Shown piece by piece: positions 8,667-62,557 of a stretch of DNA of 64,000 nt (position 1 is its first letter; each line of letters opens with the position of its first letter). A program made the translations under genes and the position numbers. Origin of the DNA: Lytechinus pictus (taxonomy: Eukaryota); contig NC_087252.1 of assembly GCF_037042905.1 (NCBI RefSeq), positions 21,886,001-21,950,000 of the forward strand, given 5' to 3'. Under the pieces are notes generated by a model. It had not been told where the DNA came from, searched no databases, and worked only from the letters and a program-made list of their open reading frames with translations.

Positions 8667-8966
8667 CTAGCAACGACAAGACCGGATAGGGTGGCAGAGC
8701 AAACCAACTACGGTTTTCCTAAAGAGCGGTTGGGAGATGACATAACAAATCGGATTGAGTAGACCGTTGACGTAAACGAACCAAATAGAACTATAAGACC
8801 AGACGCGTAGCCTCCGATAGGCGAAAGTTGGGTCGATTGTGTAGACAATCGACAAAAGAGACATTGGGAACCACGTGATAAAGAAAGCCATGACTATGAA
8901 GAGTAGAGTCTTGGTGGCGCTTCGAACCTCTGAGGCCGACTCACGATTTGCAGCTTTCTGAACTCC
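8667..8966 (-). CDS. Class A GPCR gene A1, exon 2 (TM6-TM7, C-tail)
   Basis: Acceptor ttttttctag|GGA; GVQKAANRESASEVRSATKTLLFIVMAFFITWFP..NGLLNPICY..CRC*; phase 0. Confidence 0.9.
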   Translation of the reverse strand, partial: GVQKAANRESASEVRSATKTLLFIVMAFFITWFPMSLLSIVYTIDPTFAYRRLRVWSYSSIWFVYVNGLLNPICYVISQPLFRKTVVGLLCHPIRSCRC

Positions 8967-9880
8967 CTAGAAAAAAGGCAGTTGTAAGTGAATAAAATTA
9001 ATGAAGCACCTTAACAAAATATTCAGTCAAGTTCTCAATAAATTAAACGATGAAAACCCAAGTAAATATATAATATATAATTATTTGAATAAAGAAAGAA
9101 ATCAACATTTGCGACACCTACCATAGTCCGAGCAGACGTCCAGATAAATTTCAACAAGAATATGACAACTAAACAATTATAAGATATGAGAAAGTGCTAT
9201 CCATTATCCCCGATCGAATTGTCTTGAGACATCGAGGAGAATTATTGTGGTATTTTTCTTGGCACTGTTGGTAAGAGCACAATAAACCATTTAATATTTA
9301 ATCATGGTGACTTGTGGGGCAATCGCTCATAACTTTATGATAGTGGCATTCATCTACTCCCTCTATGCAGACATGGCTTTTTGCGTAGTTTTCTTCATTA
9401 TCGTCACTAATTTTATCCCATTTTTGTATAAAATGTCCGTATCCATCAAAGTACATAATGTGAATGTATTGGAACTGATTTTTAACTAACGACAATTCAA
9501 CTCTTTACAGGCAACTTTGGTTTTGGTTAACGCAATAGTTGCGATTTTTCTCACCGCCAGGCAGAACGAATTCTAGAAACACATTAAATGTATTGAAAAT
9601 GTCCGTCGAATGTCAATGAATAGCTGCGAGGTCTTTGCCGACAATTGGTGAACGGGAACAGCAGTTCGTCCTCAGTTTCGGAGCTGACGGAAAATTGAAA
9701 ATATGTCGTTTATCCAGAGTCAAGGACGAAACTGCCGTTTTGATTCACCGATTTTTGACAAATATTTCTTGGTTGCTCATTATTATGAATGGCATTTGAC
9801 AATACATCTTCTATGTTATTGAAAGCGTTCCCTCGTGACTACACCTAACGGAACAGAGAAGAGAGGGGTGTGCTACTTAC

Positions 9881-10666
9881 ATATATTGTCTTTACTTGAG
9901 GGCGCTGTTTATTTTCATTGACATCATCTTCCGCTAGGCCTTGATCTGACACTGTGGTGTCTTCGGTAAACTCCTGGTCGATGTGCTTTCCACCGGCGAT
10001 CCCTCGAATCTTTATGAAGATCCGTACGTAGAGAATCAACGTTATGGTGAAAGGGATGATGAAGCGGATCAGCACGGTCGAGAAATGGGCGATTGGGAAC
10101 ACAGAATACCAGTGAAGACACTCTGAACCAAGCCGAAACTGCAGGAAATAGTCAGGAACTGTCGAGAATGAGAACCAGAAAACAAGAGAAACTATCCATA
10201 TGCAGATGTTGGTGTAAAGCGCCGTTCGCTTTCTTCGTCTTGTGAAATGTCCGATGGGATCGTAGATTGCCCGGTGTCTGTCAACGCAGATGGTGACGAT
10301 GATCAGGTTAGATACGAACTGGATGCTGTTGCTGACACCGTAGAACACATTGCACCTAACCGGGAATGGAAAGGGCAGACGCCCAAGGTACATGTGTAAG
10401 CATGTAATGACGAGAAAAAACCCGAAGATAAAGTCCGAGAGAGTGAGGTTTATGATGAAGTAGTTGTTGTAGCCACGCAGCCGTTTCTCGACGGCAAAGG
10501 CGGCCAGGCTGATACCATTGATCGCAATCATAATGAACACGAAAAACAGGAGTAACAACGCAATTCCCCGATTTCCATCAGGTTCTGTACCTACTTCTGT
10601 AAGTTCTGTACCTGCTATTTCTGTTTGTTCTTGAAGTAACTCAGTTGTATTGCCTTCAGCGTCCAT
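9881..10666 (-). CDS. Class A GPCR gene A1, exon 1 (N-term-TM5); histamine H3/muscarinic-like orphan, ~361 aa spliced
   Basis: TM1 Asn (ING), NNYFIINLTLSDF, C3.25, DRH, W4.50, FIIPF; donor TAT|GTAAGT at 9880; 786 nt. Confidence 0.92.
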
Positions 10667-12182
10667 GGTCGATTATGACTCTGTGATCTGACAAGTACGC
10701 TTCCTGGTTTAAAAAATATCTTCTAGAGACGTTTGTAAGATACCCTTGTAGGTCTTTGGCCACTTTGGTCTGATCTAATTTCCCAATTGCTGCACAACTC
10801 TATTTAACACATATTTGCAGTCACGCCAATTACACGCACCGTTCTTGTGATAGGCAACATTATTTCTTCTCAACTGATAAAGGTTTTACATTAAATTTCA
10901 ACTAAGTGCATTTAGTATCGTCATAATTCAAAAATTCATTTAATTTAAAGCTCTTATTGAAAATTTAGTAAAACTTAACCTATCGATTTGATGACAAAGA
11001 GAGAGGAACCCACACTGGCAAATCTTGAACAGATAGAAAAAGAAAGAGTGGGGGAGGAGGATGAGAGGAAGAGAGAGCGAGAGATAAAGAGATAGAGATG
11101 GGGATGAAAGCAATGAATTAATGTAATTTTAGAACCGATAAAGATCTTGACAATTGAGCGTTGTATTAAATAAAATTTGTTTCCGGCACCGTTTACACAA
11201 ATATTTACAATCAATTGAAAAAAAGTAATAATAATACAACGCCGAAACGAGAACACGGTCGCAATAGTATAATGATCAACATACGCACCATGATGATTAT
11301 CAAGCTATGAACATTTTTTTTTTGAACGTTTTTGTTATTTGAAATTGATCACAAATCTTTGCGTTACCGTCACCATAGCGTGTTCTTTGGCCAAGCGAAA
11401 AATCGATCTCTCCGTGGATAAGAAAAATGATAAGAAACAAGGCATTTCGTAGACCGTTAGTTTCTACTTTTGGAAAAGAGATTGATTTTTAATGTTGTAT
11501 TAGGACATTATTTCGCTCACTAAAAAACTAGGACAACCTCATTTTAGATTGGCAACACTAATATTCAAGTATGCTCAGTGTATCATACATTAAGGTTGAG
11601 AATATTCTCTTGATATTTCCTGTGGTAACTAAGAATACAAACTTTAAATTGTAAAGAATATAATCAATATCACCCAACTGAATATGTTCTAGTTCTGAAT
11701 CATCTCTTTTACAGTTAATAAAAGATCTCTAAACTTTCTGATCTTAAAGTAGTGGTGTTGCCTTTTGAAGATTGAGGGAAAAGAGGAAAAGTGTTACTAT
11801 TGATGTTTTCAGAACGACTTAGTATTTTCGTTTAGAATTGATTGATCTTCATCTTGATTTCGTTGAGGCATATATTTGTTAAAAAGTAATATTATTAGCA
11901 CGTGATCAGAGTTTCTCAATTAAAAACAAATACCTTGAATTTGAACTGATTTATGCTTTCAAATCATGTCATAAAAAATGAATAATTACCTTTATAACTT
12001 ATTATAGAACAATGATTTAAATTGGTCAGGGGTGTAACAGGAGGGGGGGGGGGGGGGCAAGAGCAAAAAAAATCCCGGCCATGAACAGGCAGTGGCGTAA
12101 TGAGGCAAAAAAGTTGAGGGGGAAGATATGGCACTATATATAAATGCACACACACACACACATAATTATATATATAATATAT

Positions 12183-13696
12183 TGTGACGGATTCGCTCGG
12201 CGGGCGTGGGTGGTCGGTCCGCCGGCAGCTCGCTCTTGTCAGGATGCCTGCCGCCGGCGGGTGACTTTTTTGCCACGTCGATTTCCAAACTTTAGTCGCG
12301 GATCCGTTTGGCAGAGATATACTGCCGCAGTTGACACTTGCACACGCCTCGATCCTGTCAGTACCACCACCAGGCAACCTCCAGACGGCTACACACTTTG
12401 TTGTCAGCTCCAACAGCTCACCCGACCATATGCATCTAGCTTGTGTAATTAAGCTCTCACGACCATATGTATCTGATTCCTGTAATTAAGCTATCTCGAC
12501 CATAGGTATGGGTTTCTCCGTAGTCAAGCTCCCACGACCATACCCATGGACTTTGGTAATTTCCTCCGTCGTCTGCTTACGACCAGTTAATACGTCTGTT
12601 CAGTACAGCGACCACGTCAGCTTCCGTACTGCAACCACGTCTGATTCCGTACTGCAACCAGGTCTGTTCAGTACAGCAACCATGCACGTCTGATTCCGTA
12701 CTGCAACCACGTCTGTTCAGTACCGCAACCACGTCTGATACCGTACTGCAACACCGTCTGTTCAGCACTGCAACCACGTCTGTTCAGTACCACGACCACG
12801 TCTGATTTCGTATTGCAACCAGTGACATCTGTTCAGTACCGGAAACTACGTCTGGTTCTTCGACCATATGTATGGGTCCTTCTGCAGTCAGGCTCTCACG
12901 ACCATACCCATTGGCTCTGCTCTACTTGTAGTTTTCACCGTTGTCTGCTCCGGACCTCCGACCGTCTGCTTCAGACCAGCAACCATCCGCTTCAGACCAA
13001 CCCGTCTGCTCCGGACCACCAGCCGTCTGCTCCAGGCTCCGAACCGTCCGCCTCCAGACCAACCAGACTACCAAAAGAGCAAGCCCTGGTATAGTCTCTT
13101 GCTGGCGTGCAAAAGACCCAACACACAAGGAAATCTAACCACAGTCGTCGCCTAGGACTACAAATCCATCCTAGGTTTCCCCGTGGAAAGACATGCGAAC
13201 GATCATATAAATCATTTCGATCGCATCCACCAACTTTATTTATTGGTTAGCGAATCCAAATCAATCTGCATACTTTACGTGCAATGCACCCCGTGGGCGC
13301 CGTATTTCAACAGATTATCGGCAAAGCCTCACGAGTACACCAACTTACTGTACTTATGCATTAATTACCGGGATTAATTATACAATATCTGTTATAGTTA
13401 ACCTCTGTTACAATCTTAGAACAGCTATAACTTTGCTCTCCAAAACCGGATATGCATGAATGACATATCAAATTAAAGCATTTATTTAGATCAAGCTAGT
13501 GATAACCACAATAATCAGTTAAACATCTCCAGGAAATTGTTATTCCACAAAAACGGTTCAAAACATGCATAACTTTCATGTTCTTATCTACGTCATTATT
13601 AGTGTAGAAACATGCATGTAATATCACCAGCTACGAAAAAAACATTATAAATCAACCAAAGATAATTTTCTAACACGAAATAAAACCTATTTCGTG

Positions 13697-13699
<3 letters not shown>
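12183..13699. mobile_element. Solo-LTR-like element (TGTGACG...CGTGACA) with internal minisatellite
   Basis: TG..CA termini with short imperfect inverted ends; atat on both flanks; internal ~22-bp repeats accacgtctg(ttca/attcc)gtactgca at 12590-12850; absent from other units. Confidence 0.6.
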
Positions 13700-13731
<32 letters not shown>

Positions 13732-13855
13732 TAAATAGGTTCATTCTTGCGGACTGAAATAATCGCTAGAGGGTATTCATTTGTCTAGCAATCTACTATG
13801 GTCAACAAGGAAATTCGTGATCACTCTCGCAAAAAGTGTTCACTAGCTTACAAGT

Positions 13856-13896
13856 TCACGAGCTTTCGAGTGCCGCTGCAACTCTTTATCAAGTGA
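13856..13896 (-). ncRNA. Second hammerhead-like motif, in the inverted pLTR
   Basis: Reverse complement reads TCACTTGATAAAGAGTTGCAGCGGCACTCGAAAGCTCGTGA, with a better-paired stem II. Confidence 0.6.
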
Positions 13897-13972
13897 CGAA
13901 AATTATCTGATATTAAACGTAGTCTATTTATACCAGTCCCCAGGACCGTACGCACGAACGCGGGAACAATAG

Positions 13973-15103
13973 GTGGGCGCTGATCCATTGTGTGACTGGT
14001 CGGGCGTTTCACCAATCAGCCCAGTCTCAGCGGTTGTGGCTAACCTATATATGGAAGGTTTTGAACAGAACGCCTTGCCCAAGTGTCCTTCCACATGCCG
14101 CCCTCGGGTGTGGAAGAGATATGTCGATGACACTTTCATAATTGTAAATAGTTCCGAAACAGACAGCCTACTCGCATGCATGAATAGCCAGCAACCGTCC
14201 ATCCAGTTCAATCTGGAGACTGAGCAAGGAGGGAAATTAGCATTCCTTGACACGCTAGTCCAAAGACACGAGGGCGGGAAACTCTCCACCTCTGTCTACC
14301 GCAAGCCCACTCATACAGACCAATACATACCATATGATTCCCACCACGACAAATCGGTCAAGAAGGGTCTTGTCAAATGCCTGTTCGACAGAGCAGCACG
14401 TATTATAACTCACCCACCTGAACTCCCGAAAGAAAGAGCACACATACGTGGCGCATTATACAGTAACGGCTACCCACGCCGTTTTATCGAGAACACTTTC
14501 AAGAAGAAACATCCGCCAAGGGATCAGAAGGTTTTCAAGACATGCACAGTCTTGCCATTCATAAATGGTCTTTCACCACAACTCAAACGCCGATTAGAAG
14601 GTCACGGTATCCGAACGATTTTCCGCTCGGACACCACCCTACACAAACAGCTTGTACACCCCAAAGACCCCATCCCTGATCAGAGACGTGATGGCGTAGT
14701 ATACAACATTCCTTGCCAGGGATGTGACGGGTCTTACATCGGTGAAACAGCCCGACCGATAGTTGAACGCATTTCTGAACACAAGCGCGATGTTCGGTTA
14801 CAGCGAACCGACACATCCGCGGTGGCAGAACATGCTTGGGATAAGCAACACCACCCAGATTTGGAGGGTGTACATTGCGTTGCCAAAGAGAGACATTGGT
14901 ATACACGCAGGATTAAGGAGGCTATTAGTATACGTCTTTGTCCTAACAACTTCAACAGAGACAGCGGGATCGACATCCCCGATTTCTGGATGCGAACCAT
15001 TCGACAGCACAATACCCCCTTACCTGGCAGTGCACGCCGACCCGATCGTTCCCGGCCCCGATCGAGGGACCGCTCAGCTAGTCAACCCCCACCCACGGGA
15101 TAA
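13973..15103 (+). CDS. Penelope-like RT C-terminal part plus GIY-YIG endonuclease (truncated; N-terminal residues derive from the inverted pLTR)
   Basis: SPVSAVVANLYME, WKRYVDDTF, LAFLD, VYRKPTHTDQY, GVVYNIPCQGC..YIGET..RISEH. Confidence 0.88.
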   Translation: MGADPLCDWSGVSPISPVSAVVANLYMEGFEQNALPKCPSTCRPRVWKRYVDDTFIIVNSSETDSLLACMNSQQPSIQFNLETEQGGKLAFLDTLVQRHEGGKLSTSVYRKPTHTDQYIPYDSHHDKSVKKGLVKCLFDRAARIITHPPELPKERAHIRGALYSNGYPRRFIENTFKKKHPPRDQKVFKTCTVLPFINGLSPQLKRRLEGHGIRTIFRSDTTLHKQLVHPKDPIPDQRRDGVVYNIPCQGCDGSYIGETARPIVERISEHKRDVRLQRTDTSAVAEHAWDKQHHPDLEGVHCVAKERHWYTRRIKEAISIRLCPNNFNRDSGIDIPDFWMRTIRQHNTPLPGSARRPDRSRPRSRDRSASQPPPTG

Positions 15104-15411
15104 TAGCGAGCCCGCCAATTTTGTCTTATTTGCATATTGCCGACTCACGGCGTATTTGCATATACCTCAGGCTTATATACGGATCACCGGCCGCACCGTA
15201 CACCGACGCGCTGATTGGTGAAACGCCCGACCAATCACACAACGGATCAGTGCCCTCCTATTGTTCCCGCGTTTGTGCGTACGGTCCTGGGGACTGGTAT
15301 AAATAGACTACGTTTTTTGGGGAAAAAAGGAAAGCAATTTTACAAGGCAACGATAGTCAAAACTGACTAGTTTGCCTTTTCAAAATAACAACAACAACAA
15401 CATTATTTTCG

Positions 15412-15452
15412 TCACTTGATAAAGAGTTGCAGCGGCACTTGAAAGCTCGTGA
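15412..15452 (+). ncRNA. Minimal hammerhead-ribozyme-like motif in the Penelope pLTR
   Basis: TCAC-TTGATAA-AGAGTTGC-AGCG-GCACTT-GAAA-GCTC-GTGA: stem I TCAC/GTGA, variant core, stem II, GAAA, palindromic AGCT. Confidence 0.6.
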
Positions 15453-17135
15453 ACTTGTAAGCTAGTAAGCACTTTTTGCGAGAGTGATCACGAATTTCCT
15501 AGAAAGCTAGTGAACACTTTTTGCGAGAGTGATCACGAATTTCCTTGTTGACCATAGTAGATTGCGAGACAAATGAATACCCTCTAGCGATTATATATAT
15601 ATATATATATTTGCGAGCGAGCAAAAATTTGGATATTGTTATTTTAAAGATCAAATTTTGGGATAGATTTTTACATAATATTCAGAAAATTATATTGTAT
15701 TTCACGCTTCTCTCTTTCCTTTTCTGTTTTTCTTAACGCCACTGTGAACATGATTTTTTTTCATTGTTCTCGAGCATACCAGCAAAGCTCCATGTGGCAG
15801 TAGCATAAGTGAGTAAAAAAGGAGGGGCACATTAAGGCACATGTGGCAAAAACATGCCTAATATAAGTCCCGAGCGAGCGAAGTGGGCGAAAAAAAATCA
15901 CCTTTTCATGAGAATCTAACTTTGAGAAAGATTTTGGCATGATATTCAGAAAATAACACAATATATATTTCACTTTTCCTATGCTTTTCTTTCCTCATTT
16001 TTCTCTTTTGTTCTTGGATGTAGAACTTTTGTGCCATACCACAAACCTTTCCATCTCTATGCCACTGCTATTCGGGTGGGGTCCGGGGGTAGAGCCCCCG
16101 GAAACCCTTGATTCTAAAGCCATTTTAAACCTTACAGATGGCCACTATTTTTAATCAAATTGCGGGTTTAGTTTTTAGACAAGGCATTAATTCAACGCAG
16201 TTGCGTAATAAACAAAATATTTTGAGGGGCACAACACAGCAAATGCGGGAAAATTAGTAAAATTCGCCACCGAGCTAAAAATTGATTTTGCCTTTTGGAA
16301 TGAAATTCTAATTACGTGATAGATTTTTCATTATATTCAATTAAATAACATATTTCATTGTTTCCCATTCATTCGATTTTGGTGGCAGCACTGTATAAGA
16401 CTTGGTTCTTCTAAGCTGTCTCCACATTCTTATATTGATATTTTGTTTATTACTATGTATATTTATGTGTTTTTATGAATGAAATAAATTGAAATAGAAT
16501 TTCTTTGCCTCCTTTATGTTCTTTTGTTTCCCCGTGGCTGTGGAACCACGCCTGCACCCCCCTCCCCCTGTACTTCAATAATTGAAGTACATGAAACAGG
16601 AAAGGTGCATACAGGGGTCCGTTATAGAGCCCTTTAATTGTAACAGATGAAGAGCCCCTACTGAATTGGGTCTGGGGCAGCTACCGTATGATGGATATGT
16701 CTAATCCTTGGCTAACCATTTTGTCTTAATTGCACCCCTTATTGTGTAAAATTTAGCGAGCTTGTAATATACTTCATATACAATCATGCCATCCATCTTT
16801 CTTGCCACTCTTCATTTCCAATCCTCGGCAGCGCGTTCGTGTTTTAGCTTCCCTTTTTTTTCGAAGTCCCTTTTCTTCATCTTCCAATTGAGCTTTTGGC
16901 TCATTGCATTTTTACCTTCCCGCTTTTGTTTACTATTATTTTATTTCCCTTTCTTATTAATATAGTATTAGTATTTCGGAATGGTGCTTTCTTACATGTC
17001 CTTCTTTACTTCCTTTTCCCGCTTTCCTTCCGTTTTCCCTCTTTATGTTTTTTTCTATTATTTCCCCCTTTTCCCTTTTCTTCCCTTTTTTCTTTCTTTC
17101 TTTTCCCCGTTTTTGTATTATCCCGGTGAATTTCC

Positions 17136-17500
17136 ATCATTATCACCATCACCACCAACATTATCATCATCATCGTCAACAATAATCAATCATATTCATC
17201 ACCATCATCCTCCTTATCATCACTGCTATCACCATTACCATCATTATTACCGTCACCATTACCACCTATATTATCATCATCATCATCACTATCAGCATCC
17301 TCATCATCCTCATCACCATCATCATCCTTATCATCATCACTACCATCACCAATACCATCACCATTACTATCACCATTACCACCAACATTTTCGTCATCAG
17401 GGTCATCATCACTATCAGCATCATCAGCAACGGCTTCCACACCAAGCACTGACAACGACATCAACAACAATGTTCATAATCTGTATCATCATCGCCGTCG
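17136..17500. repeat. (CAT/CAC)n low-complexity block, unit 1
   Basis: Homologous blocks at ~29850-30620, ~46090-46650 and ~58410-59260, which contain N runs. Confidence 0.9.
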
Positions 17501-18099
17501 TCTAGAAATCAGCACAAATACCGTCACAACCAATATCTTCTTTTATCTACGAATACAGATGTCGAAGTCAAAAGGAGGTCCAATGAAGAAAAGAAAGAAT
17601 TTTTTTAGGAAAGGATCGACAAGGAGAAGAAAAGGATTGACGGGGGATTTGATGATAAAGTGTAAAAAAGATAAGAACAAGATGATCAATTAAACAAATA
17701 ATATATCATACTGAGAGTATTTTGATTACTATTTTTAATATAGAGTGAAGTTCGTTCATTATGTCAAATTATGCGGGAGTGATGTGGTCTTGATAATGAT
17801 ACGGAGTTTGTTCTTCATGACTTTATAACATAGATGTAACATAAAATCTAAATATACTATACTGTCTATACAATATACGTGTATGCATTATCCAAGCATT
17901 GTCTTGTCATTGCACAAGATACATTTATCATGTGAGCCCGAAATATATAACAAAAAAGAGTATTTGAATTAATACACTTTGAACTAAAATATTAATAAAA
18001 AAATGTAAAATAAAGATGGATCTCAACATATAAAATCATCTTCCAAACATGCAATGTGGGGGGGGGGGGGGGTTAATAACCATTACCATTTTCAATCTA

Positions 18100-21219: not shown

Positions 21220-21538
21220 GACTCTCACTACGGAGCTGGAAATTATGTTTCTAAATTTTTGAATTTTACTAGTGGCACTATAATCGTTGCATGAAGGATA
21301 ACTTACTACTGTTAGATTCTTATCAAACCCAATACAAATATGGCTACATGCTCTTGCTGACCGTCACTCAAGGTAGTACTTCGATACTAAAATGCTTTGA
21401 CTTATATACGAGGCAGTTTCCCTTGAAAGCAATATCATTCAAGGCGGTATCTTTTGATATGGATATCACTTTTTCAATAGATAGTTAGAATAAAAAGATT
21501 CAGTGACGAAAGGTACTATTTCATTGTAAGATATTGAG

Positions 21539-25020: not shown

Positions 25021-25806
25021 AGATATGGTCTTTACTTGGGGGCGCTGTTTATTTTCCTTGACATCACCTTCCGGTAGGCTATGATCTGACACTGTGGTAT
25101 CTTCGGTAAACTCCTTGTCGATGTGCCTTCCACCGGCGATCCCTCGAATCTTTTTGAAGATCCGTATGTAGAGAATCAACGTTATGGTGAAAGGGATGAT
25201 GAAGCGGATCAGTACGGCCGACAATTGGGCGATTGGGAACACAGAATACCAGTGAAGACACTCTGAACTAAGCCGAAACTGCAGAATATAGTCAGGAACC
25301 GTCGAGTATGAAAACCAGAAAACAAAAGAAACGATCCACACGCAGATGTTGGTGTAGAGCGCCGTTCGCTTTCTTCGTCTTGTGAAATGTCCGATGGGAT
25401 TATAGGTTGCCCGGTGTCTGTCAACGCAGATGGTGACGATGATCAGGTTAGATACGAATTGGATGCTGTTGCTTACACCGTAGAACACCTTGCACCTAAC
25501 CGGAAAGGGAAAGGGAAGACGCCCAAGGTACATGTGTAAGCATGTAATGACGAGAAAAATCCCGAAGATAAAGTCCGAAATCGTAAGGTTTATGATGAAG
25601 TAGTTGTTGTAGCCACGCAGCTGTTTCTCGACGGCAAAGGCGGCCAGGCAGATACCATTGATCGCAATCATAATGATCACGAAAACCAGGAGTAACAACG
25701 GGATCCATCGATTTCTATCAGGCTCTGTACCTACTTCTGTAAGTTCTGTACCTGCTATTTCTGTATGTTCTTGAAGTAATTCAGTTGTATTGCCTTCAGC
25801 GTACAT
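25021..25806 (-). CDS. GPCR A2 exon 1
   Basis: Paralogue of A1 exon 1; donor TCT|GTAAGT; 786 nt. Confidence 0.92.
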
Positions 25807-29664: not shown

Positions 29665-31617
29665 CGTAGTAGTAGGGGTCGATGGCCACGGGGGGGGGGG
29701 GTAAAAAAACAAAATTTCCTGGTCTTATCATGATGTGAAGAATTATGAACATAATTTTTCATGATTGTACGCAACTTCTTGAAATTCAGTATTTTTGGGG
29801 GGTCTTGATGGTTAAATCAGCACTATAAACGCCACAATAACATAACCATTATTCACCTTCATCAATAACATCACCATCATGATCATCACCATCGCAATCA
29901 TCCTCCTCATCATCACCACTATCATTATAATCGTCGTTATTACCATCACTACCATCATCCTCATCCTAATCACCATTACTATCATTATCAACATCATCAT
30001 TACCACTAACATTATCATCACCATCATCATCACCATCATCAACATCACTATCATCATCATCGTCGTCATTATCACAATNNNNNNNNNNNNNNNNNNNNNN
30101 NNNNNNNNNNNNNNNNNNNNNNNNNNNNNNNNNNNNNNNNNNNNNNNNNNNNNNNNNNNNNNNNNNNNNNNNNNNNNNNNNNNNNNNNNNNNNNNNNNNN
30201 NNNNNNNNNNNNNNNNNATCACCATTACCACCAACGTTATCATCATCATCGTCACCATCATCAATCATAATCATCACCATCATCATCACTATCATCATCA
30301 TAATCTTTATCACCATCACCATCATCCTCCTTATCATCACTGCTATCACCATTACCATCATTATTACCGTCACCATTACCACCAATATTATCATCATCAT
30401 CATCATCACTATCAGCATCCTCATCATCCTCATCACCATCATCATTCTTATCATCATCACTACCATCACCAATACCATCACCATTACTATCACCATTACC
30501 ACCAACATTTTCGTCATCAGGGTCATCATCACTATCATCATCATCAGCAACGACTTCCACACCAAGCACTGACAACGACACTAACAACAATGTTCATAAT
30601 CTGTATCATCAACGCCGTCGTCGTCTAAAAATCAGCCCAAATACCGTCACAATCAATATATTCTTTTATCTACGAATACAGAAGTCGAAGTCAAAAGAGA
30701 GGTGCAATGAAGAAAGGAAAAAAAAGATTTTTTTTTAAGGAAAGGATCGACAAGGAGAAGAAAAAGATTGACGGGGGATTTGATGATAAAGTGTAAAAAG
30801 ATAATGAAAACAAGATGATCAACAACAACAAAAAAATTATACATATCATACTGAAGGTATTCTGGTTATTATTTTTAGTACATAGAGTGAAGTTCGTTCA
30901 TAATGTCAGATTATGCGGGAGTGATGTGATCTTAATAATAAGAGTTTGTTATGACTTCATAACATAGATATAACATAAAATCTACTTATACTATACTCTC
31001 TATACAATATACATGTATGCATTATCCAAGCATTGCCGTGTTATTACACAAGATACATTAATCATGTGAGCCCCAAATATATAACAAAATAGAGTATTTG
31101 AATTAATACACTTGGAACTAAAATATTAATGAAAAAAAGTAAAATTTAGATGGATCTCAACAGATATAATTTTATTCAAAACATACAATGGGGGGGGGGG
31201 GGAGATTGATTACACTTACCATTTTCAATCTGTACCGTTGTCTATATGATTTCATACCCGACAAACCAACGGGCAGTTTTCACAAGTAATACATAGACAA
31301 GAGAAAAATCATTTTGTCGTTGATTTCGTAGCTGTAACTCAATAGGAGTGGTGAAACAAATTACCACATTACAGATATACCCATATAAAAAGATACCATC
31401 TCATAATCAGAATTTTAATATTTTTCTTTTACCTATACGTTTTTTGTGTTTTTGACATACTAATGCCAATACATAAAAGACCAAGTTCATTTTTACTTTC
31501 CTCTAAAATCAACAACAAAATTAATTGATCAGTGATTCTGAGGTGTAATGACTTATTTTTTATTTAGCAATAAATTTATTCACAATAAGAACTTCAATAT
31601 CTAGAATTAGATCCGAA

Positions 31618-33233: not shown

Positions 33234-33896
33234 AGATTCTATGGTAGTAATGGGGCCTTCTTTGGAATCACCAGCGTCGTTACCACCGTCCGATTTGCTT
33301 TGCCGCGACCATGAAGTGTCCCCATTAAAAACTTCACCGATGTGCTTTCTACCGGCTATCTTTTGGATCTTCACGAAGATCCGCACATAGATTATCAGCA
33401 TGATTGTGAAAGGGATGATGAACCGAATAAATACTGGTACTATCTGGCCGATCGCGTAGATCGCCTTTCGCTTGCTCCTGGTGGTGAAATGCCCGATGGG
33501 ATCGTAGGTTGCTCGGTGTCTATCGATGCAGATGGTGACGATGATCAGATTTGATACAAACTGGACGCTGCTGAAGACACCGTAGAAGATCCGGCACGAG
33601 TTGTTACCAGGGAATGGGAATCGTCTAAAATAGGTATGCAAGGATGTCACGATGATGACAAACCCAAAGAGAAAGTCAGAGATTGTAAGGTTTATGATGA
33701 AGTAGTTGTTGTAGCCACGGAGTCGTTTTTCGACGGCAAATGCTGCCAGGCTGAGGCCATTGGTCGTGATGATGAGGGCCACTAGGAGCAGCGGTAGGAG
33801 CAGGGCGTGGAGACCACGTCTCTCATCATCCGTTTCCGTCGCTACTGTTTCTTGTTGCTCCTGAAAAACGTCGGTCGTATTCCCGTCCGCGTACAT
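33234..33896 (-). CDS. GPCR B2 exon 1 with a 117-bp in-frame deletion of TM4/ECL2 (probably non-functional)
   Basis: KRKAIYA|IGQIVPV junction; 663 nt versus 780 nt in B1, B3 and B4. Confidence 0.8.
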
Positions 33897-36033: not shown

Positions 36034-36336
36034 CTAGCAACGACAATACCGGATAGGGCGGCAGAGCAAACCAAATACGGTTTTCCTGAAGAGCGGTTGG
36101 GAGATGACGTAACAGATCGGATTGAGTAGACCGTTCACGTAAACGAGCCAAATAGTTATCCAAAAAGCCCAGTAGGGTAGCCGCGGGTAGCCGAGCGTTC
36201 GATCGATAGTGACGACAATCGCCAAAAGAGACGTTGGGAACCACGTGATGAAGAAGGCCATGACGATGAAGAGTAGGGTCTTGGTGGCGCTTCGAACCTC
36301 TGAGGCCGGCTCACGATTTGCGGCTTTTTGAACTCC
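36034..36336 (-). CDS. GPCR A3 exon 2
   Basis: Same acceptor and phase as A2; TWFP, NPICY. Confidence 0.9.
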   Translation of the reverse strand, partial: GVQKAANREPASEVRSATKTLLFIVMAFFITWFPTSLLAIVVTIDRTLGYPRLPYWAFWITIWLVYVNGLLNPICYVISQPLFRKTVFGLLCRPIRYCRC

Positions 36337-41856: not shown

Positions 41857-42642
41857 AGATATTGTCTTTACTTGAGGGCGCTGTTTATTTTCCTTGACAT
41901 CACCTTCCGGTAGGCTATGATCTGACACTGTGGTATCTTCGGTAAACTCCTTGTCGATGTGCCTTCCACTGGCGATCCCTCGAATCTTTATGAAGATCCG
42001 TATGTAGAGAATCAACATTATGGTGAAAGGGATGATGAAGCGGATCAGTACGGTCGACAATTGGGCGATTGGAAACACAGAATACCAGTGAAAACACTCT
42101 GAACCAAGCCGAAACTGCAGAATATAGTCAGGAACCGTCGAGTATGAAAACCAGAAAACAAAAGAAACGATCCACACGCAGATGTTGGTGTAGAGCGCCG
42201 TTCGCTTTCTTCGTCTTGTGAAATGTCCGATGGGATTATAGGTTGCCCGGTGTCTGTCAACGCAGATGGTGACGATGATCAGGTTAGATACGAATTGGAT
42301 GCTGTTGCTGACACCGTAGAACACCTTGCACCTAACCGGAAAGGGAAAGGGAAGACGCCCAAGGTACATGTGTAAGCATGTAATGACGAGAAAAATCCCG
42401 AAGATAAAGTCCGAAATCGTAAGGTTTATGATGAAGTAGTTGTTGTAGCCACGCAGCTGTTTCTCGACGGCAAAGGCGGCCAGGCAGATACCATTGATCG
42501 CAATCATAATGAACACGAAAACCAGGAGTAACAACGGGATCCATCGATTTCTATCAGGCTCTGTACCTACTTCTGTAAGTTCTGTACCTGCTATTTCTGT
42601 ATGTTCTTGAAGTAATTCAGTTGTATTGCCTTCAGCGTACAT
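41857..42642 (-). CDS. GPCR A3 exon 1
   Basis: 786 nt, donor GTAAGT; intact motifs. Confidence 0.92.
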
Positions 42643-44120: not shown

Positions 44121-47100
44121 GCTGCGAGCGAAGCGAGCGAGCAAAAATCTCGATATTTTTATTTTAAAAATCAAATTTGGGATATATTTTTACATAATAT
44201 TCAGAAAATGATATGATGTCTTACTTTTCTCTCTTTCCTTTTCTGTATTTATGTACGCCACTGTGAATTTGATTTTGTTTATTGTTCGCGAGCATTAGAG
44301 CAAAGCTCCATGCAGCAGTGGCATAAGAGTGAGTAAAAAAAAAAAGAGGGGCACTGTATGGCACGTGTGGCAACAAGTTACTTTATATAAGTCCTGAGCG
44401 AGCGAAGCGGGCGAAAAAATCACCTTTTCATGAGAATCTAACTTTGAGAAAGATTTTGACATGATATTCAGAAAATAACACAATATCTTACACTTTCCCT
44501 TTGCTTTTCTGTCCTCCTTTTCCTTTTTGTTCTTGGATGTAGAACTATTGGGGGCCATAGCACAAACTTTTCCATCTCTATGCCACTGCTATTCGGGTGG
44601 GGTCCGGGGGCAGAGACCCCGGAAACCCTTGATTCTAAAACCATTTAAAACCTTACAGATGGCTGCTATTTTTAATCAAATTACGGGTTCAGTTTTTACA
44701 CAAGACATTAATTCAACGCAGTTGCGTAATAAACCAAATATTTTGAGGGGCACAACACAGCAAATGCGGGATAATTTGTTTAAGTCGCTAGCGAGCGAAA
44801 AAGGAATTTGGCTTTTTGAAATGAAATTATAATTACATGAATTACGAGATAGATTTTTCATTATATTCAATCAAACATATTTCATTGTTTTCCATTCATG
44901 TGATTTCGTTGTCTCCATGTTTTTTGGCACCCAATGGCTGTGGAACCATGCATGCTCCCCCCCCCCCTGTACGCCAGTGCTTCAATAATTGACGTAAATT
45001 GACTTCATAGAGCCCTTTAATATTAACAGATGAAGAGCCCCTACTAAATAGGGTCTGGGGCAGCTACCATTGGATGGATATGTCTAACCCTTGGCTAACC
45101 ATTTTGTCTTGATTGCACCCGTTATTGTATAAAACTTAGCAAGCTTGTAATATACTTCATATGCATTCATACCATCCATCTTTCTTCCCGTTCTTTATTT
45201 CCAATCCTCGGCAGCGCGTTCGTGTTTTAGCTTCTCTTTTTTTTTTAGAAGTCCCTTTTCTTCGTTTTCAAATTGAGCTTTATGCTCATTCCATTTTACC
45301 TTCATTTCCCGCTTTTGTTTACTATTATTTTATTTCCCTTTCTTATTAATATAGTATTAGTATTTCGGAATGGTGCGTCTTACATGTTCTTCATTACTTC
45401 TTTTTCCCGCTTTCCTTCCGCTTTCCCTCTTTATGTTTTTTTATATTTCCCCCCTTTTTTTCCTTTCCCTTTTCCTTCTTTTTTCTTTCTTTCTTTCTTT
45501 CTTTTTCCCGTTTATTTTTCTGGCGGAGAAACCCGCCAGGGGGGAGGCAGCCTGCCCCCCGCCCCCGCCTGTTACGCCACTGTGTAGATAACGTAGTGCC
45601 GTGATAATGTAGCATAATAGGTGTGTTGGCTCAGTTAGTAGAGAGTAACAGGTGCGTAGTAGGGGTCCTTGGCTAAGAGAGAGGAGGGGGGGGGGGCGGG
45701 TATAAAGCCAAAATTTCCCGGTCTTCTCATGATGTGAAGAATTGTGAACATAATTTTTTATGATTGTACGCGAGCGATAGCGCGAAGATCTATGCGATAC
45801 ATTTTTTGGCCTTTTGAAAATGAAATTCTAATGTAATTGAAGAGGCGTTTCTAACCCGTTTAGCATTTGGACATAGGACATAGCCCATGCTTGGGCCGTA
45901 TATCCGCAACTTCTTGAAGTTCAGTAATTTTTTTTGTCTTGATTGCGACCGTCATTGCTTGAAATTTAACAAGCCTATATTGACTTCATACATATACCCT
46001 ATCCCATTCTTCCAAATCTTCTACGTTTATTATAATAATAGGGGCCTTGATGGTTAAATCAGCACTATAAACGGAACAATAACATAACCATTATTCACCG
46101 CCATCAATAACATCACCATCATGATCAACATCATCGCACTCATCCTCCTCATCATCACCATTATCATTCTAATCGTCGTTATTACCATCACTACCATCAT
46201 CCTCATCGTAATCACCATTACTATCATTATCAACATCATTACCACTAACATTATCATCACCATCATCAACATCACAATCATCATCATCATTATCATTACC
46301 ATTATCATCATCATCATAACCAACATCATTGTCATCAATCATCATCTTCANNNNNNNNNNNNNNNNNNNNNNNNNNNNNNNNNNNNNNNNNNNNNNNNNN
46401 NNNNNNNNNNNNNNNNNNNNNNNNNNNNNNNNNNNNNNNNNNNNNNNNNNNNNNNNNNNNNNNNNNNNNNNNNNNNNNNNNNNNNNNNNNNNNNNNNNNN
46501 NNNTCATCCTTATCATCATCACTATTACCACGAACATTATCGTCATCAGGGTCACCTTCACTATCAGCATCATCAGCAACGGCTTCCACACCAACCACTG
46601 ACAACGACATCAACAACAATGTTAATAATCTGTATCATCATCGCCGTCGTCTAGAAATCAGCACAAATACCGTCACAATCAATATCTTCTTTTATCTGCG
46701 AATACAGAAGTCGAAGTCACAAGGAGGTCCAATGAAGAAAAGAAATAATTTTTTTAAGAAAGGATCGACAAGAAGAAGAAAAGGATTGACGGGGGATTTG
46801 AGGATAAAGTGTAAAAAAGATAAGAACAAGATGGTCAATTAAACAAATAATATATCATTATGAGAGTATTTTGATTATTATTTTTAATATAGAGTGAAGT
46901 TCGTTCATTATGTCAAATTATGCGGGAGTGATGTGGTCTTGATAATGATACGGAGTTTGTTCTTCATGACTTTATAACATAGATGTAACATAAAATCTAA
47001 ATATACTATACTGTCTATACAATAAACGTGTATGCAGTATCCAAGCATTGTCTTGTCATTACACAAGATACATTAATCATGTGAGCCCGAAATGTATAAC

Positions 47101-53599: not shown

Positions 53600-54385
53600 A
53601 GATATTGTCTTTACTTGAGGGCGCTGTTTATTTTCCATGACATCACCTTCCGGTAGGCTATGATCTGACACTGTGGTATCTTCGGTAAACTCCTTGTCGA
53701 TGTGCCTTCCACCGGCGATCCCTCGAATCTTTATGAAGATCCGTATGTAGAGAATCAACATTATGGTGAAAGGGATGATGAAGCGGATCAGTACGGTCGA
53801 CAATTGGGCGATTGGAAACACAGAATACCAATGAAAACACTCTGAACCAAGCCGAAACTGCAGAATATAGTCAGGAACCGTCGAGTATGAAAACCAGAAA
53901 ACAAAAGAAACGAGCCACACGCAGATGTTGGTGTAGAGCGCCGTTCGCTTTCTTCGTCTTGTGAAATGTCCAATGGGATCGTAGGTTGCACGGTGTCTGT
54001 CAACGCAGATGGTGACGATGATCAGGTTAGATACGAATTGAATGCTGTTGCTTACACCGTAGAACACCTTGCACCTAACCGGAAAGGGAAAGGGAAGACG
54101 CCCAAGGTACATGTGTAAGCATGTAATGACGAGAAAAATCCCGAAGATAAAGTCCGAAATCGTAAGGTTTATGATGAAGTAGTTGTTGTAGCCACGCAGC
54201 CGTTTCTCGACGGCAAAGGCGGCCAGGCAGATACCATTGATCGCAATCATAATGAACACGAAAAACAGGAGTAACAACGCGATTCCCCGATTTCCATCAG
54301 GCTCTGTACCTACTTCTGTAAGTTCTGTACCTGCTATTTCTGTTTGTTCTTGAAGTAACTCGGTTGTATTGCCTTCAGCGTACAT
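53600..54385 (-). CDS. GPCR A4 exon 1
   Basis: 786 nt, donor GTAAGT; intact. Confidence 0.92.
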
Positions 54386-55850: not shown

Positions 55851-55883
<33 letters not shown>

Positions 55884-57411: not shown

Positions 57412-58131
57412 CGGTGGCGTAGCTAGGATTTTTTTTCCTGGGGGGCACTGGGGGTCCTTGCTTTTTCAGGGGGGGGGCACAATTTTTTTTCCGGTGTGTG
57501 TGTGTATGTGTCACAAGGGCGGATCCGACTATCGCCAATAGGGGACGGGGCCCGAAATTATCTTCACCTATATTTTCCCCGATCAGTCACTTCTTAGTTT
57601 TATTCTTATAAAACAACATAAACATGAAATAATCTCATAAGCTTTCATGTATTTTGTCCTGAAAATTTAATATTCTGGGCAATGTTATGTATGATCCTGA
57701 ACAAGATTCGTATGTAATTAGATGATAACTGCGAACGCCAAGCGCGAGCAGAAATTTATATTAATTGTTCTAGCATTATCGAAAAGGGACCCGTTAAGGA
57801 CTGCTTACAGTTACCCACGAAGACGGTATATATTTCAATAATGGGAACGCGAAGCGCGAGCAAAAAAAATTATATAGTAACATGAAATATTTTTTTTTGC
57901 AAGTCTTCCCCTCACGTACATTATTTCATTCACTCCTCTTTCTCCTCTTATTTTCCTTTTCTTTTTTCTTTTCTTTTTCCTTCTTTTCTGTTTTTCTTTT
58001 CTTCTTTCTCCCTTGTTTTTTTTTTTTTTTGCTCTTCCAATTTTTTTCAGGGGGGGGGGGCACCTGGGGGGGGGGCACACCAAATCTCAGGGGGGCACGT
58101 GCCCCCCCCCCCCCCCGTAGCTACGCCACTG
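57412..58131. mobile_element. hAT-like MITE, unit 4 copy, TSD cgtagtag
   Basis: Homologous to 28805-29664. Confidence 0.85.
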
Positions 58132-59859
58132 CGTAGTAGTAGGGGTCGATGGCCACGGGGGGGGGGGGTAAAAAAACAAAATTTCCCGGTCATGATGTGA
58201 AGAATTATGAACATAATTTTTCATGATTGTACGCAACTTCTTGAAATTCAGTATTTTTGGGGGGTCTTGATTGCGACCGTTATTGCTTGAAATTTATCAA
58301 GCCTATACCATATCCCCTATCACATTCTTCCAAATCTTCTGCGTTTATTATAATAGTAGGGGCCTTGATGGTTAAATCAGCACTATAAACGCCACAATAA
58401 CATAACCATTATTCACCTTCATCAATAACATCACCATCATGATCATCACCATCGCAATCATCCTCCTCATCATCACCACTATCATTATAATCGTCGTTAT
58501 TACCATCACTACCATCATCCTCATCCTAATCACCATTATTATCATTATCAACATCATCATCACCACTAACATTATCATCACCATCATCAACATCACTATC
58601 ATCATCATCATCGTCATTATCACAATCNNNNNNNNNNNNNNNNNNNNNNNNNNNNNNNNNNNNNNNNNNNNNNNNNNNNNNNNNNNNNNNNNNNNNNNNN
58701 NNNNNNNNNNNNNNNNNNNNNNNNNNNNNNNNNNNNNNNNNNNNNNNNNNNNNNNNNNNNNNNNNATCACCATTACCACCAACATTATCATCATCATCGT
58801 CACCATCATCAATCATAATCATCACCATCATCAACATCACTATCATCATCATCATCGTCATTATCACAATCNNNNNNNNNNNNNNNNNNNNNNNNNNNNN
58901 NNNNNNNNNNNNNNNNNNNNNNNNNNNNNNNNNNNNNNNNNNNNNNNNNNNNNNNNNNNNNNNNNNNNNNNNNNNNNNNNNNNNNNNNNNNNNNNNNNNN
59001 NNNNNNNNNATCACCATTACCACCAATATTATCATCATCATCATCATCACTATCAGCATCCTCATCATCCTCATCACCATCATCATCCTTATCATCATCA
59101 CTACCATCACCAATACCATCACCATTACTATCACCATTACCACCAACATTTTCGTCATCAGGGTCATCATCACTATCAGCATCATCAGCAACGGCTTCCA
59201 CACCAACCACTGACAACGACATCAGCAACAATGTTCATAATCTGTATCATCATCGCCGTCGTCTAGAAATCAGCACAAATACCGTCACAACCAATATCTT
59301 CTTTTATCTACGAATACAGAAGTCGAAGTCAAAAGGAGGTCCAATGAAGAAAAGAAAGAATTTTTTTTAGGAAAGGATCGACAAGGAGAAGAAAAGGATT
59401 GACGGGGGATTTGATGATAAAGTGTAAAAAGATAAGAACAAGATGATCAATTAAGAAAATAATACATCATACTGAGAGTATATTGATTATTATTTTTAAT
59501 ATAGAGTGAAGTTCGTTCATTATGTCAAATTATGCGGGAGTGATGTGGTCTTGATAATGATACGGAGTTTGTTCTTCATGACTTTATAACATAGATGTAA
59601 CATAAAATCTAAATATACTATACTGTCTATACAATATACGTGTATGCATTATCCAAGCATTGTCTTGTCATTACACAAGATACATTAATCATGTGAGCCC
59701 GAAATATATAACAAAAAAGAGTATTTGAATTAATACACTTTGAACTAAAATATTAATAAAAAAATGTAAAATAAAGATGGATCTCAACAGATAAAAATTA
59801 TCTTCCAAACATACAATGTGGGGGGGGGGGGGTTAATTACCCTTACCATTTTCAATCTA

Positions 59860-60720: not shown

Positions 60721-61026
60721 CTATTTGCCTCTGCAGTACCGGATAGGGTGGCGGATCAAACCGAATACGGTTTTCCGAAACAGCGGCTGCGAGACAACGT
60801 AGCAAAGCGGATTAAGTAAGCTATTCACGTAGACCAGCCAACCGGGTACCAAATGCGCCCAGTCAGGAAGCCGTGGATAGATGAGTGTCGGTTCAATCGA
60901 GTAGATAAAGGAGATGACAGAAACTGGAAACCAGGTAATAAAGAAAGCGATGACAATGAAGAGGAGTGTCTTTGTGGCGCTGCGAACCTCGGATGCTGAT
61001 TCACGCTTGACTGCTTTCTGACCACC
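60721..61026 (-). CDS. GPCR B4 exon 2
   Basis: aattag|GGT acceptor; 306 nt. Confidence 0.9.
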   Translation of the reverse strand, partial: GGQKAVKRESASEVRSATKTLLFIVIAFFITWFPVSVISFIYSIEPTLIYPRLPDWAHLVPGWLVYVNSLLNPLCYVVSQPLFRKTVFGLIRHPIRYCRGK

Positions 61027-61777
61027 CTAATTGGGAAAAGATTCATGGATAAAAATAAATGTCATGAATTTCATATTAACATACCGCCTGAAGATTGAAT
61101 GATGTCTGCTTACAAACGCTACGTTACAACATTGGTTTTTACGTGTACGTAGTAATTGATTTTGTGCATCACCAGGATAAAGAGTGTAATAATTACAATA
61201 GTAATGATATGTAACATTTGTATAGCGCTTTATACAAATGTTTCAAAGCGCTGCATACTATTTACCCCGGCTTATGCACGGCTACCCTGATCGGACGCTC
61301 GAGTATTCACGGAATTTCTGCATACCATGAAGGCCTACCCATAAACTATACCTGGTTGGAGAGTGGCAAATGTAGATCAATGCCTTGCCAAAGGACGCGA
61401 GTGGGGATTCGAACCCCAGCCCTTGAGGTTCAAAGTCAGGACACTTATCCACTGAAACGCAACGCCTCTACATGAATTAACTTTTATGACAAATAATGGC
61501 TACTCAATGCTCTCTGTATTCAATCAATTGCCTCATTATGGACGGACCTTTGCAGGGATGTACTTGAGGCCGGCCCCGAGGCCAAATTTTGCCGGCCTTG
61601 GCCACGACCCGAGTCAGCGTAGAAAGTGTATGGGAGAAGGCTTTCTCCAGCCGATTTCCTTCGCCTTTTCCTCCCTACATCTTTCTTGCTTTTGAAATTT
61701 TTCAAGTAAGGGACTCGCTCGAACCCCGGAACAACCCCCCGGCTACGGGCTTTGATATGGAATTAATGAATACTCAC

Positions 61778-62557
61778 AGATTCTATGGTAGAAATGGGGC
61801 CTTCTTTGGAATCACCAGCGTCGTTACCACCGTCCGATTTGCTCTGCCGCGACCATGAAGTGTCCCCATTAAATTCTTCACCGATGTGCTTTCTACCGGC
61901 TATCTTTTGGATCTTCACGAAGATCCGCACATAGATTATCAGCATGATTGTGAAAGGGATGATGAACCGAATAAATACTGGTACTATCTGGCCGATCGGG
62001 TTCACGAAATGCCAAACGATGCAACCCGAAGTGTTGTTGAAGTCTATGACGAAGTCGGGAATCGTCGAAAAACCGAACCAGAAAAGGATCGATGCAACCC
62101 ATACGGAAATATTCGCGTAGATCGCCTTTCGCTTGCTCCTGGTGGTGAAATGCCCGATGGGATCGTAGGTTGCTCGGTGTCTATCGATGCAGATGGTGAC
62201 GATGATCAGATTTGATACAAACTGGACGCTGCTGAAGACACCGTAGAAGATCCGGCACGAGTTGTTACCCGGGAATGGGAATCGTCTAAAATAGGTGTGC
62301 AAGGATGTCACGATAATGACAAACCCAAAGAGAAAGTCCGAGATTGTAAGGTTTATAATGAAGTAGTTGTTGTAGCCACGGAGTCGTTTCTCGACCGCAA
62401 AGGCGGCCAGGCTGAGGCCATTGGTCGTGATGATGAGGGCCACTAGAAGCAGCGGTAGGAGTAGGGCGTGGAGACCTCGTCTCTCATCATCCGTTCCCGT
62501 CGCTACTGTTTCGTGTTGCTCCTGAAAAACATCGGTCGTATTCCCGTCCCCGTACAT
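61778..62557 (-). CDS. GPCR B4 exon 1
   Basis: 780 nt, donor GTGAGT; intact. Confidence 0.92.

Follow-up and report, generated by a model that had tools for sequence, protein, structure and literature searches.

The window analysed here, a stretch of 64,000 nucleotides from the sea urchin Lytechinus pictus (NC_087252.1, forward-strand positions 21,886,001 to 21,950,000), holds eight genes for G protein-coupled receptors (GPCRs) of class A, of two types, A and B, all on the minus strand and of two exons each, which alternate in the plus-coordinate order A1 B1 A2 B2 A3 B3 A4 B4. The locus as a whole is probably to be explained as a birth-and-death tandem array of a two-gene cassette of sea-urchin-specific orphan class A GPCRs. 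B is under strong purifying selection, with omega (the ratio of non-synonymous to synonymous divergence, dN/dS) at about 0.13-0.16; the diversity of A mostly predates the amplification and consists of discrete types that have been moved between copies by short-tract exchange.

A and B are old paralogues (dS >1.2) lying head-to-tail, and in the proposed course of events unequal crossing-over between units of ~12 kb would have multiplied the pair, giving the alternation. Purifying selection holds B, and surplus B copies are decaying (B2, the fragment psiB and one B of L. variegatus); every A is intact, the copies differing mainly in a stretch of ~30 codons that covers the extracellular ends of transmembrane helices TM6 and TM7 and extracellular loop 3 (ECL3). 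The rest of A is homogenised within species, and A2 has taken the patch of another type by short-tract exchange.

The gene models run from the last base of the A1 stop codon at 8667 to the first base of the B4 ATG at 62557. Long open reading frames (ORFs) with an A-type N-terminus lie at 9845-10666, 24952-25806, 41734-42642 and 53477-54385, and those with a B-type N-terminus at 20425-21228, 33219-33905, 49142-49945 and 61763-62557; tblastn with one TM6-TM7 segment returned exactly eight second exons, 0.7-5.5 kb downstream of the respective first exons. Each gene has one phase-0 GT..AG intron, at an identical position in intracellular loop 3 (ICL3) in all eight, with the donor GTAAGT in A and GTGAGT in B and polypyrimidine-AG acceptors, and the spliced proteins are 361-362 residues long. 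ORFs, splice sites and matches to Pfam 7tm_1 agree on the eight same-strand, two-exon receptors in ABABABAB order that a preliminary description of this DNA had reported. The exons are as follows.

9881..10666, minus strand: A1 exon 1, N-terminus to ICL3, TM1-5 (ORF, GTAAGT donor, 7tm_1)
8667..8966, minus strand: A1 exon 2, TM6-ECL3-TM7-helix 8; ECL3 type i, with a one-codon deletion also found in L. variegatus P0012
20440..21219, minus strand: B1 exon 1, identical to RefSeq P0082
18938..19243, minus strand: B1 exon 2 (tblastn match, RefSeq match)
25021..25806, minus strand: A2 exon 1, grouping with A3 and A4, identical to P0091
23465..23767, minus strand: A2 exon 2, A3-like flanks around a patch of ~80 nt of A6/P0010 type (ECL3 type ii)
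33234..33896, minus strand: B2 exon 1, with a 117-nt in-frame deletion, identical to P0002
32177..32482, minus strand: B2 exon 2
41857..42642, minus strand: A3 exon 1
36034..36336, minus strand: A3 exon 2, ECL3 type iii, as in L. variegatus P0089
49157..49936, minus strand: B3 exon 1, identical to P0083
48107..48412, minus strand: B3 exon 2
53600..54385, minus strand: A4 exon 1, identical to P0008
52061..52363, minus strand: A4 exon 2, ECL3 type iii
61778..62557, minus strand: B4 exon 1, identical to P0084
60721..61026, minus strand: B4 exon 2

Within the window the models of B1, B2, B3, B4, A2 and A4 match RefSeq proteins of L. pictus residue for residue, as do those of A5, B5, C and D outside it. 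The phase-0 ICL3 intron is common to all 18 intact genes of the A-E subfamily modelled in the two species. Two older L. pictus RefSeq models are irregular: XP_054760744.1 (P0009), which is A5-like, has an internally duplicated ICL3-TM6 segment, and in XP_054760747.1 (P0011) an A1-like exon 1 is followed by a cysteine-rich C-terminus of unrelated sequence. Both are probably artefacts of assembly or modelling, and P0011 could reflect an alternative 3' exon.

Repetition of a two-gene unit

Self-comparison of the window finds whole units, introns and intergenic DNA included, to be 87-97% identical, with a period of 11.7-12.7 kb apart from two private insertions. Since introns and spacers are homologous from unit to unit as well as the genes, the strict alternation is accounted for by tandem duplication of a unit of ~12 kb holding both; what the preliminary description had offered as a fallback, that the order is no more than an outcome of how large the duplicated unit is, is thus the best supported of its readings. 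Genome search and flanking DNA show that the array extends past the window, which is 21,886,001-21,950,000 of the chromosome-scale contig C8. On the minus strand it comprises psiB A1 B1 A2 B2 A3 B3 A4 B4 A5, psiB being a remnant of a B gene, interrupted by a stop codon, that lies 6 kb ahead of the window, and beyond the right end there follow, in divergent orientation on the plus strand, C, D, A6, B5 and E:

C8:21963684-22022361, plus strand: C, D, A6, B5 and E, intact two-exon genes of the A-E subfamily

In the direction of transcription a B starts ~2.1 kb after the end of each A (A5>B4, A4>B3, A3>B2, A2>B1, A1>psiB and A6>B5). The L. pictus genome has at least 39 matches to the family, with clusters on C2, C5, C7, C8, C9 and C11.

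The closest comparison is with L. variegatus (CM031022.1). A first locus there has C on the minus strand, then, divergent, an A (P0089), a B (P0086) 2.3 kb on and an A (P0012) 4.5 kb further; a second, ~110 kb from the first, has an A (P0010) with a dead B 2.1 kb later. The latter (L001:14498-16664) is an unannotated pseudogene with a frameshifted exon 1 (97-aa ORF) and an acceptor changed from AG to CG, its exon 2 still being 97% identical to B. A-then-B linkage, the synteny that the preliminary description had proposed to check, is therefore kept at two loci of a relative. The orthologous array of L. variegatus is A-B-A, against five A, four B and a B fragment in L. pictus, which points, assembly permitting, to a recent cassette-wise expansion in L. 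pictus and agrees with the lineage-specific tandem amplification first proposed. Type-A proteins, at 84% identity or more, were found only in these two species. In S. purpuratus the nearest protein is XP_001186388.1, the one B-like entry there, with an identity of 68% to B and of 60% to A. Within the limits of a word-based search, homologues came only from echinoids (Lytechinus, Strongylocentrotus and Diadema), the close ones being proteins with automatic names.

Decay falls on B. The 117-nt deletion in exon 1 of B2 takes out TM4, W4.50 and the cysteine of extracellular loop 2 (ECL2), and to judge by this loss B2 is most probably non-functional. Over both species three of the eight B loci are dead and none of the nine A loci (Fisher p ~0.08), counts that fit redundant B copies and retained, differentiated A copies.

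The regular adjacency might suggest, in line with the tuning receptor and conserved partner that the preliminary description had thought possible, that A and B form an obligate heteromer, kept as a pair by selection, in which the variable A tunes the ligand and the conserved B acts as co-receptor or trafficking partner. The A-then-B spacing of ~2.1-2.3 kb in six L. pictus and two L. variegatus pairs, the strongly contrasting selective regimes of the two genes and the near equality of the B protein in both species would agree with this. Duplication of one unit holding the two genes, however, accounts in full for the adjacency, and an intact A has a dead B as its neighbour three times, twice in L. 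pictus (A3/B2 and A1/psiB) and once in L. variegatus (P0010/psiB). The intact copies number 6 A to 4 B in L. pictus and 3 to 1 in L. variegatus, and not 1:1; B keeps all the motifs of a self-sufficient signalling receptor (DRH, W6.48-x-P, NPxxY and the ECL2 disulfide). We consider such a heteromer very improbable. Hardly more credible would be an A-B functional module that combines exchangeable trans-species A patches with an invariant B partner, as a class A analogue of OR/Orco, or chimeric splicing of A exon 1 to the exon 2 of the B downstream; the shared phase (0) and position of the two introns make chimeras of this kind conceivable. The preferred reading is that A and B are separate receptors, several tuned A and one conserved B, which would most likely respond to external or metabolite cues.

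Conservation of B and the patch types of A

A and B diverged anciently (dS 1.29, dN 0.26). Among the copies, pairwise dN (Nei-Gojobori) is 0.015-0.065 for A and 0.009-0.015 for B, pairwise dS 0.03-0.18 and 0.03-0.10, and pairwise omega 0.33-0.76 for A and mostly 0.11-0.15 for B (0.36 for B2-B3). Codon-model maximum-likelihood estimates (M0) over exon 1 are 0.41 for A and 0.16 for B, both far below 1; over the 32-codon TM6-ECL3-TM7 stretch they are 1.1 (tree length 1.83) for A and 0.50 (tree length 0.33) for B. In non-coding DNA the divergence (K) of one unit from another is for the most part 0.02-0.10, and it varies along the unit as a mosaic. Between L. pictus and L. variegatus dS is 0.15-0.19 and dN of B 0.009-0.027, and omega of orthologous A pairs is ~0.23.

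B, whose near-invariance was noticed at the outset (exon 2 differs between copies by 1-2 residues), is better conserved than the flanking non-coding DNA, contrary to one of the outcomes that the preliminary description had named as a refutation: dN of B is 0.004-0.02 against 0.02-0.10 in most alignable non-coding sequence, and far below dS. This is constraint on the protein over and above mere recency. Gene conversion as the main cause of the uniformity was rejected, exon 1 of B1-B4 having a dS of 0.10-0.13 and a dN of only 0.011-0.019.

In A, the variability of the TM6-ECL3-TM7 region was likewise borne out, with 2-18 non-synonymous changes between copies within 32 codons, and it falls into types that are shared between the species. 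Type i comprises A1 and L. variegatus P0012, with the same one-codon deletion in both; type ii A2, A6 and P0010; type iii A3, A4 and P0089; and type iv A5. Two different types are separated in the 32 codons by 9-12 non-synonymous changes and 1-2 synonymous ones; for one and the same type compared across the two species the figures are 3-5 and 1-3. The exon 1 tree unites A2, A3 and A4 (support 96/99) and rejects clades by type (approximately unbiased, AU, test p ~4e-4), whereas the tree of the 96-nt stretch unites A3, A4 and P0089 (96/91) and A1 with P0012 (95/99), a grouping of A2+A3+A4 being rejected (p=0.0016). When A2 was scanned by maximum chi-square, the window being left free, an A6/P0010-like patch emerged at nt 911-988 of the alignment (permutation p<=0.002), with 11 A6-like and 0 A3-like sites inside the patch against 8 and 57 outside. 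The conflict between the two trees, together with the A2 patch, indicates that most of A has been homogenised within species or recently duplicated, and that the patch keeps an old, species-spanning identity, short-tract exchange having carried it to another copy at least once. That the diversity of A is a product of the recent amplification was rejected, the types being present in L. variegatus as well.

In Ballesteros-Weinstein numbering the patch covers 6.51, 6.52, 6.55, 6.58-6.59, ECL3 and 7.32-7.41; in this established convention these positions make up the rim of a class A receptor on its extracellular side, together with some of the orthosteric pocket. The patch may set ligand specificity, since the pocket positions 6.51, 6.52, 6.55 and 7.35 lie within it, and its diversity may be preserved or promoted by selection against homogenisation. 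Selection is likely to be what maintains the diversity of the patch.

The variability of A might instead be neutral, redundant copies being under relaxed constraint at a tolerant loop, with no part for diversifying selection or ligand tuning. The omega of 1.1 for the stretch is indistinguishable from 1 (likelihood-ratio test against omega=1, p=0.76), the between-type counts (9-12 : 1-2), taken by themselves, do not depart significantly from a neutral 3:1, and pairwise Fisher tests for positive selection in the stretch are not significant. If A2-A3 (12N:1S) and C-D (6N:0S) are pooled, the binomial p (one-sided) comes to ~0.03, which we discount because the stretch was chosen post hoc and the A2-A3 difference is a patch exchange with no new mutation. 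Neutrality is less easily squared with the recurrence of the same discrete types in two species, with 3-5 non-synonymous differences within types as against 9-12 between them, or with the integrity of 9 of 9 A genes and the low omega of the orthologous A pairs. The stretch also escapes the homogenisation seen in exon 1, and its changes fall on canonical pocket positions as well as on the loop. On balance a neutral origin appears somewhat unlikely, and the reading of a retained, functionally relevant patch is preferred.

Among the neighbouring genes, exon 2 of C is separated from that of D by 9 non-synonymous changes and 1 synonymous change, 6:0 of them within the TM6-ECL3-TM7 stretch.

Assembly, copy number and expression

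Assembly gaps interrupt three of the B-to-A spacers:

30079..30217: assembly gap in the B2-A2 spacer, (ATC)n repeat
46351..46503: assembly gap in the B3-A3 spacer, (ATC)n-type repeat
58628-58765 and 58872-59009: two assembly gaps in the B4-A4 spacer, (ATC)n-type repeats

Each of the four N gaps is 2-4 kb away from the nearest exon, between the 3' end of a B and the 5' end of the next A, so that no coding frame crosses a gap; the long ORFs that do run across gaps (poly-Ile/His/Asp, on both strands) were dismissed as artefacts of repeat translation. Microsatellite blocks of (ATC)n/(CAT)n occur in every B-to-A spacer (16981-17505, 29879-30628, 46121-46654 and 58439-59266), those of units 2-4 being expanded and each broken by a gap. 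Two short contigs are bounded by gaps, 30218-46350 with B2 and A3 and 46504-58627 with B3 and A4, and the order and number of the cassettes accordingly depend on scaffolding.

Several points weigh against the reading of the locus as an expanded array with a preserved A patch. The copy number may be inflated, two gap-bounded cassettes differing by ~4%. Older RefSeq versions, based on a different assembly, depart from the current copies at 2-13 residues, the same range as among the B copies or among A2, A3 and A4, and that annotation has fewer copies, their accessions falling into two separate runs. The type groupings were drawn up once the alignment had been inspected, which weakens the AU tests and leaves the scan unaffected; no omega above 1 is established for the stretch, and relaxed constraint fits it as well as diversifying selection does. 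The existence of the intron is predicted from its conservation and from the RefSeq models, and the orientation of the pocket and the presumed ligand class are read from residue numbering. Finally, in three rRNA-depleted RNA-seq runs of unrecorded tissue, sampled at ~6%, the A4 exons have 0 reads and the B3 exons at most ~1x.

The first of these points raises the question whether one or two gap-bounded cassettes could be the other haplotype of a neighbour, scaffolded in tandem, so that the true array would be shorter. Sea urchins have very high heterozygosity, and the divergence is in the allelic range: 1.6-8% in non-coding DNA among gap-bounded units, with the older RefSeq versions lying in the range of the paralogues. 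Every B-to-A spacer of units 2-4 contains an N gap, and the blocks run from microsatellite to microsatellite. The three ECL3 types in A2, A3/A4 and A5 and the private deletion of B2, on the other hand, bespeak several distinct genes, unplaced scaffolds yielded no additional near-identical copies in the genome search, and L. variegatus independently has more than one A per array. We therefore regard a partly artefactual copy number as rather doubtful. A shorter true array would leave the alternation, the contrast between A and B and the patch types intact, as none of these depends on the exact count.

No indexed RNA run is on record as holding the locus. The same three RNA-seq runs, at that sampling, contain no splice-junction reads; the few reads on B3 exons have a sense-compatible mate orientation. 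Reads fall almost entirely on intronic and intergenic repeats, and 87-95% of them run on into unlike sequence. Very high depth, in partial-match reads, is found at 52700-53500 (the A4 intron), 51510-51700, 50700-50900 and 48700-48900, and one read consensus at such stretches ends in a tRNA-like GGTTCGAATCCC motif; these are probably short interspersed elements (SINE-type) or dispersed repeats of another kind, with the transcripts coming from other places in the genome. A further run, X1, presumed to be RNA, covers intergenic DNA at 3-5x and resembles low-depth DNA.

The two private insertions set off by the self-comparison are the following.

12096..15613, plus strand: 3.5-kb insertion private to unit 1, in the A1-B1 spacer
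36514-40806: 4.3-kb insertion in the A3 intron (5520 nt), absent from A2 and A4

The first contains a 376-aa ORF (13973-15103, plus strand) with sub-threshold Pfam matches to RVT_1 (E 0.08) and then GIY-YIG (E 0.12), a weak indication in this order that the insertion may be the remnant of a Penelope-like retroelement; tandem repeats of 23/45 nt lie just upstream of the ORF, at 12592-12821. The second has no long ORF and includes a 105-nt tandem repeat at 38773-39011. The similarity of A3 switches at this insertion, being A4-like on the exon 2 side and A2-like on the exon 1 side. Other tandem repeats, at 1217-2045 (33-nt), 4623-5061 (151-nt) and 7813-8153 (16/42-nt, in inverted arrangement), are found upstream of the last cassette of the array.

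Receptor class and comparison with known systems

Both exons score above the 7tm_1 (PF00001) gathering cut-off of 30.5 bits, exon 1 with 77.6-90.8 bits (profile positions 2-188) and exon 2 with 43-48 bits (190-260). The class A signatures N1.50, D2.50, the C3.25-ECL2 cysteine pair, W4.50, P5.50, W6.48-x-P6.50 and NPxxY are present in A1-A4, B1, B3 and B4, where DRH stands for DRY; the deletion in B2 has cost it W4.50 and the cysteine of ECL2. DRH occurs in 60 of the 62 receptors compared. An AlphaFold2 model has seven helices and helix 8 (predicted TM-score, pTM, 0.72). The closest solved structures are those of M2/M4/M5, H1/H3 and the beta-1 receptor, at a target-normalised TM-score of ~0.85 and 19-25% identity, and the best sequence matches are 5-HT2A, muscarinic and H1 receptors (E ~1e-21).

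Identity as amine receptors was nonetheless rejected. At position 3.32, counted from R3.50, A has Ser and B has Phe, so that the aminergic Asp3.32 is absent; the HMMER alignment to 5-HT2A places Gly opposite D155, and no acidic residue was found in TM3 of A or B between C3.25 and D3.49 of the DRH motif. The amine-receptor names given in RefSeq (5-HT1F-like, muscarinic M5-like and others) are consequently misleading. C and D carry Glu at 3.36. Arg5.46 is found in 16 of 16 members of the A-E subfamily and in 0 of 46 members of the wider family. From the numbering, this residue would be expected to bind an acidic group of the ligand, and all members may thus recognise acidic-group ligands through Arg5.46 in a pocket devoid of Asp3.32. 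Compared with aminergic class A GPCRs (5-HT, muscarinic, histamine, adrenergic and TAAR), then, the receptors share the best sequence and fold matches, the C3.25-ECL2 disulfide, D2.50, W6.48-x-P6.50, NPxxY and helix 8, and differ in lacking Asp3.32, in having Arg5.46 rather than the usual Ser or Ala, in DRH for DRY and in a short ICL3.

A chemosensory role of the locus is suggested by analogy. It is conceivable, if less plausible, that the receptors answer to internal signals, an acidic-group metabolite or transmitter, B being the conserved physiological receptor and the A genes its diverging duplicates. The fold and nearest sequences are of amine type, an omega of ~0.13 for B is what conserved signalling receptors typically show, the subfamily has Arg5.46 without exception, and the genes have an intron where echinoderm odorant-like receptor genes are reported to be mostly single-exon (PMC7042368). 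The restriction of the type-A lineage to Lytechinus and of the family to echinoids, with many tandem clusters, is on the contrary the pattern of environment-facing receptors, and near-zero bulk RNA-seq signal would be expected of narrowly expressed sensory receptors, though the tissues of the runs are unrecorded. A role in sensing external or metabolite cues is preferred.

Sea-urchin genomes contain hundreds of orphan lineage-specific GPCRs, presumed to be chemoreceptors, and we know of almost none with a ligand or a defined determinant of specificity. The locus amounts to a natural experiment in this respect, since near-identical A receptors that differ almost only in a patch of ~80-100 nt, in 3-4 versions, stand beside a constant B, and concerted evolution and preserved diversity are seen side by side within one gene. 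Candidate residues to swap for de-orphanisation are 6.51, 6.52, 6.55, ECL3 and 7.32-7.41, with Arg5.46 as a probe of the ligand class, and L. pictus is genetically tractable, so that knock-outs are feasible. With the misleading amine-receptor names flagged, the value of the locus lies in offering a defined system for receptor de-orphanisation and for the study of diversity preserved in a homogenising array.

Formally, the combination of many variable receptors with one conserved one recalls OR/Orco, T1R1 or T1R2 with T1R3, and GABA-B R1/R2. The likeness ends with that pattern: none of these is a class A pair in alternating tandem genes, and here the B copies are themselves multiplied and several of them are decaying. 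The vertebrate OR, TAAR and V1R clusters, shaped by duplication in tandem, by gene conversion and by selection on the binding residues, also bear comparison, as do the primate L/M opsin arrays, in which tandem copies exchange sequence. There too unequal crossing-over sets copy number, pseudogenes are interspersed, and conversion homogenises most of the gene and leaves a few ligand-contact or tuning sites different; here, by contrast, it is a heterologous gene pair that repeats, and the divergent part is one contiguous patch of ~30 codons whose types span species.

The nearest counterparts are the surreal-GPCRs of sea urchins, lineage-specific, rapid and tandemly clustered expansions of rhodopsin-type receptors (Raible et al. 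2006, Dev Biol 300:461; summaries in PMC5442662 and PMC7042368), which are candidate chemoreceptors expressed in tube feet and pedicellariae (PMC5442662, PMC7042368). The genes described here resemble them in being rhodopsin-type seven-helix receptors with echinoid-only homologues, tandem clusters in both orientations and no assigned ligand, and in their birth-and-death dynamics and fast change on the extracellular side. They differ in the conserved ICL3 intron, which sets them apart from a mostly single-exon repertoire, and in that the unit amplified is an old paralogue pair under opposite regimes rather than a single gene. By distribution, clustering and evolutionary mode the locus fits the surreal-GPCR kind, with an atypical intron. 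No paper dealing with the subfamily, or with GPCR arrays of L. pictus, came up in a literature search. What is new is the two-gene repeat unit with its opposite regimes, the trans-species patch types with exchange of the patch, and the non-aminergic pocket with Arg5.46; the locus is otherwise a well-resolved example of the known sea-urchin receptor expansion and not a new type of system.

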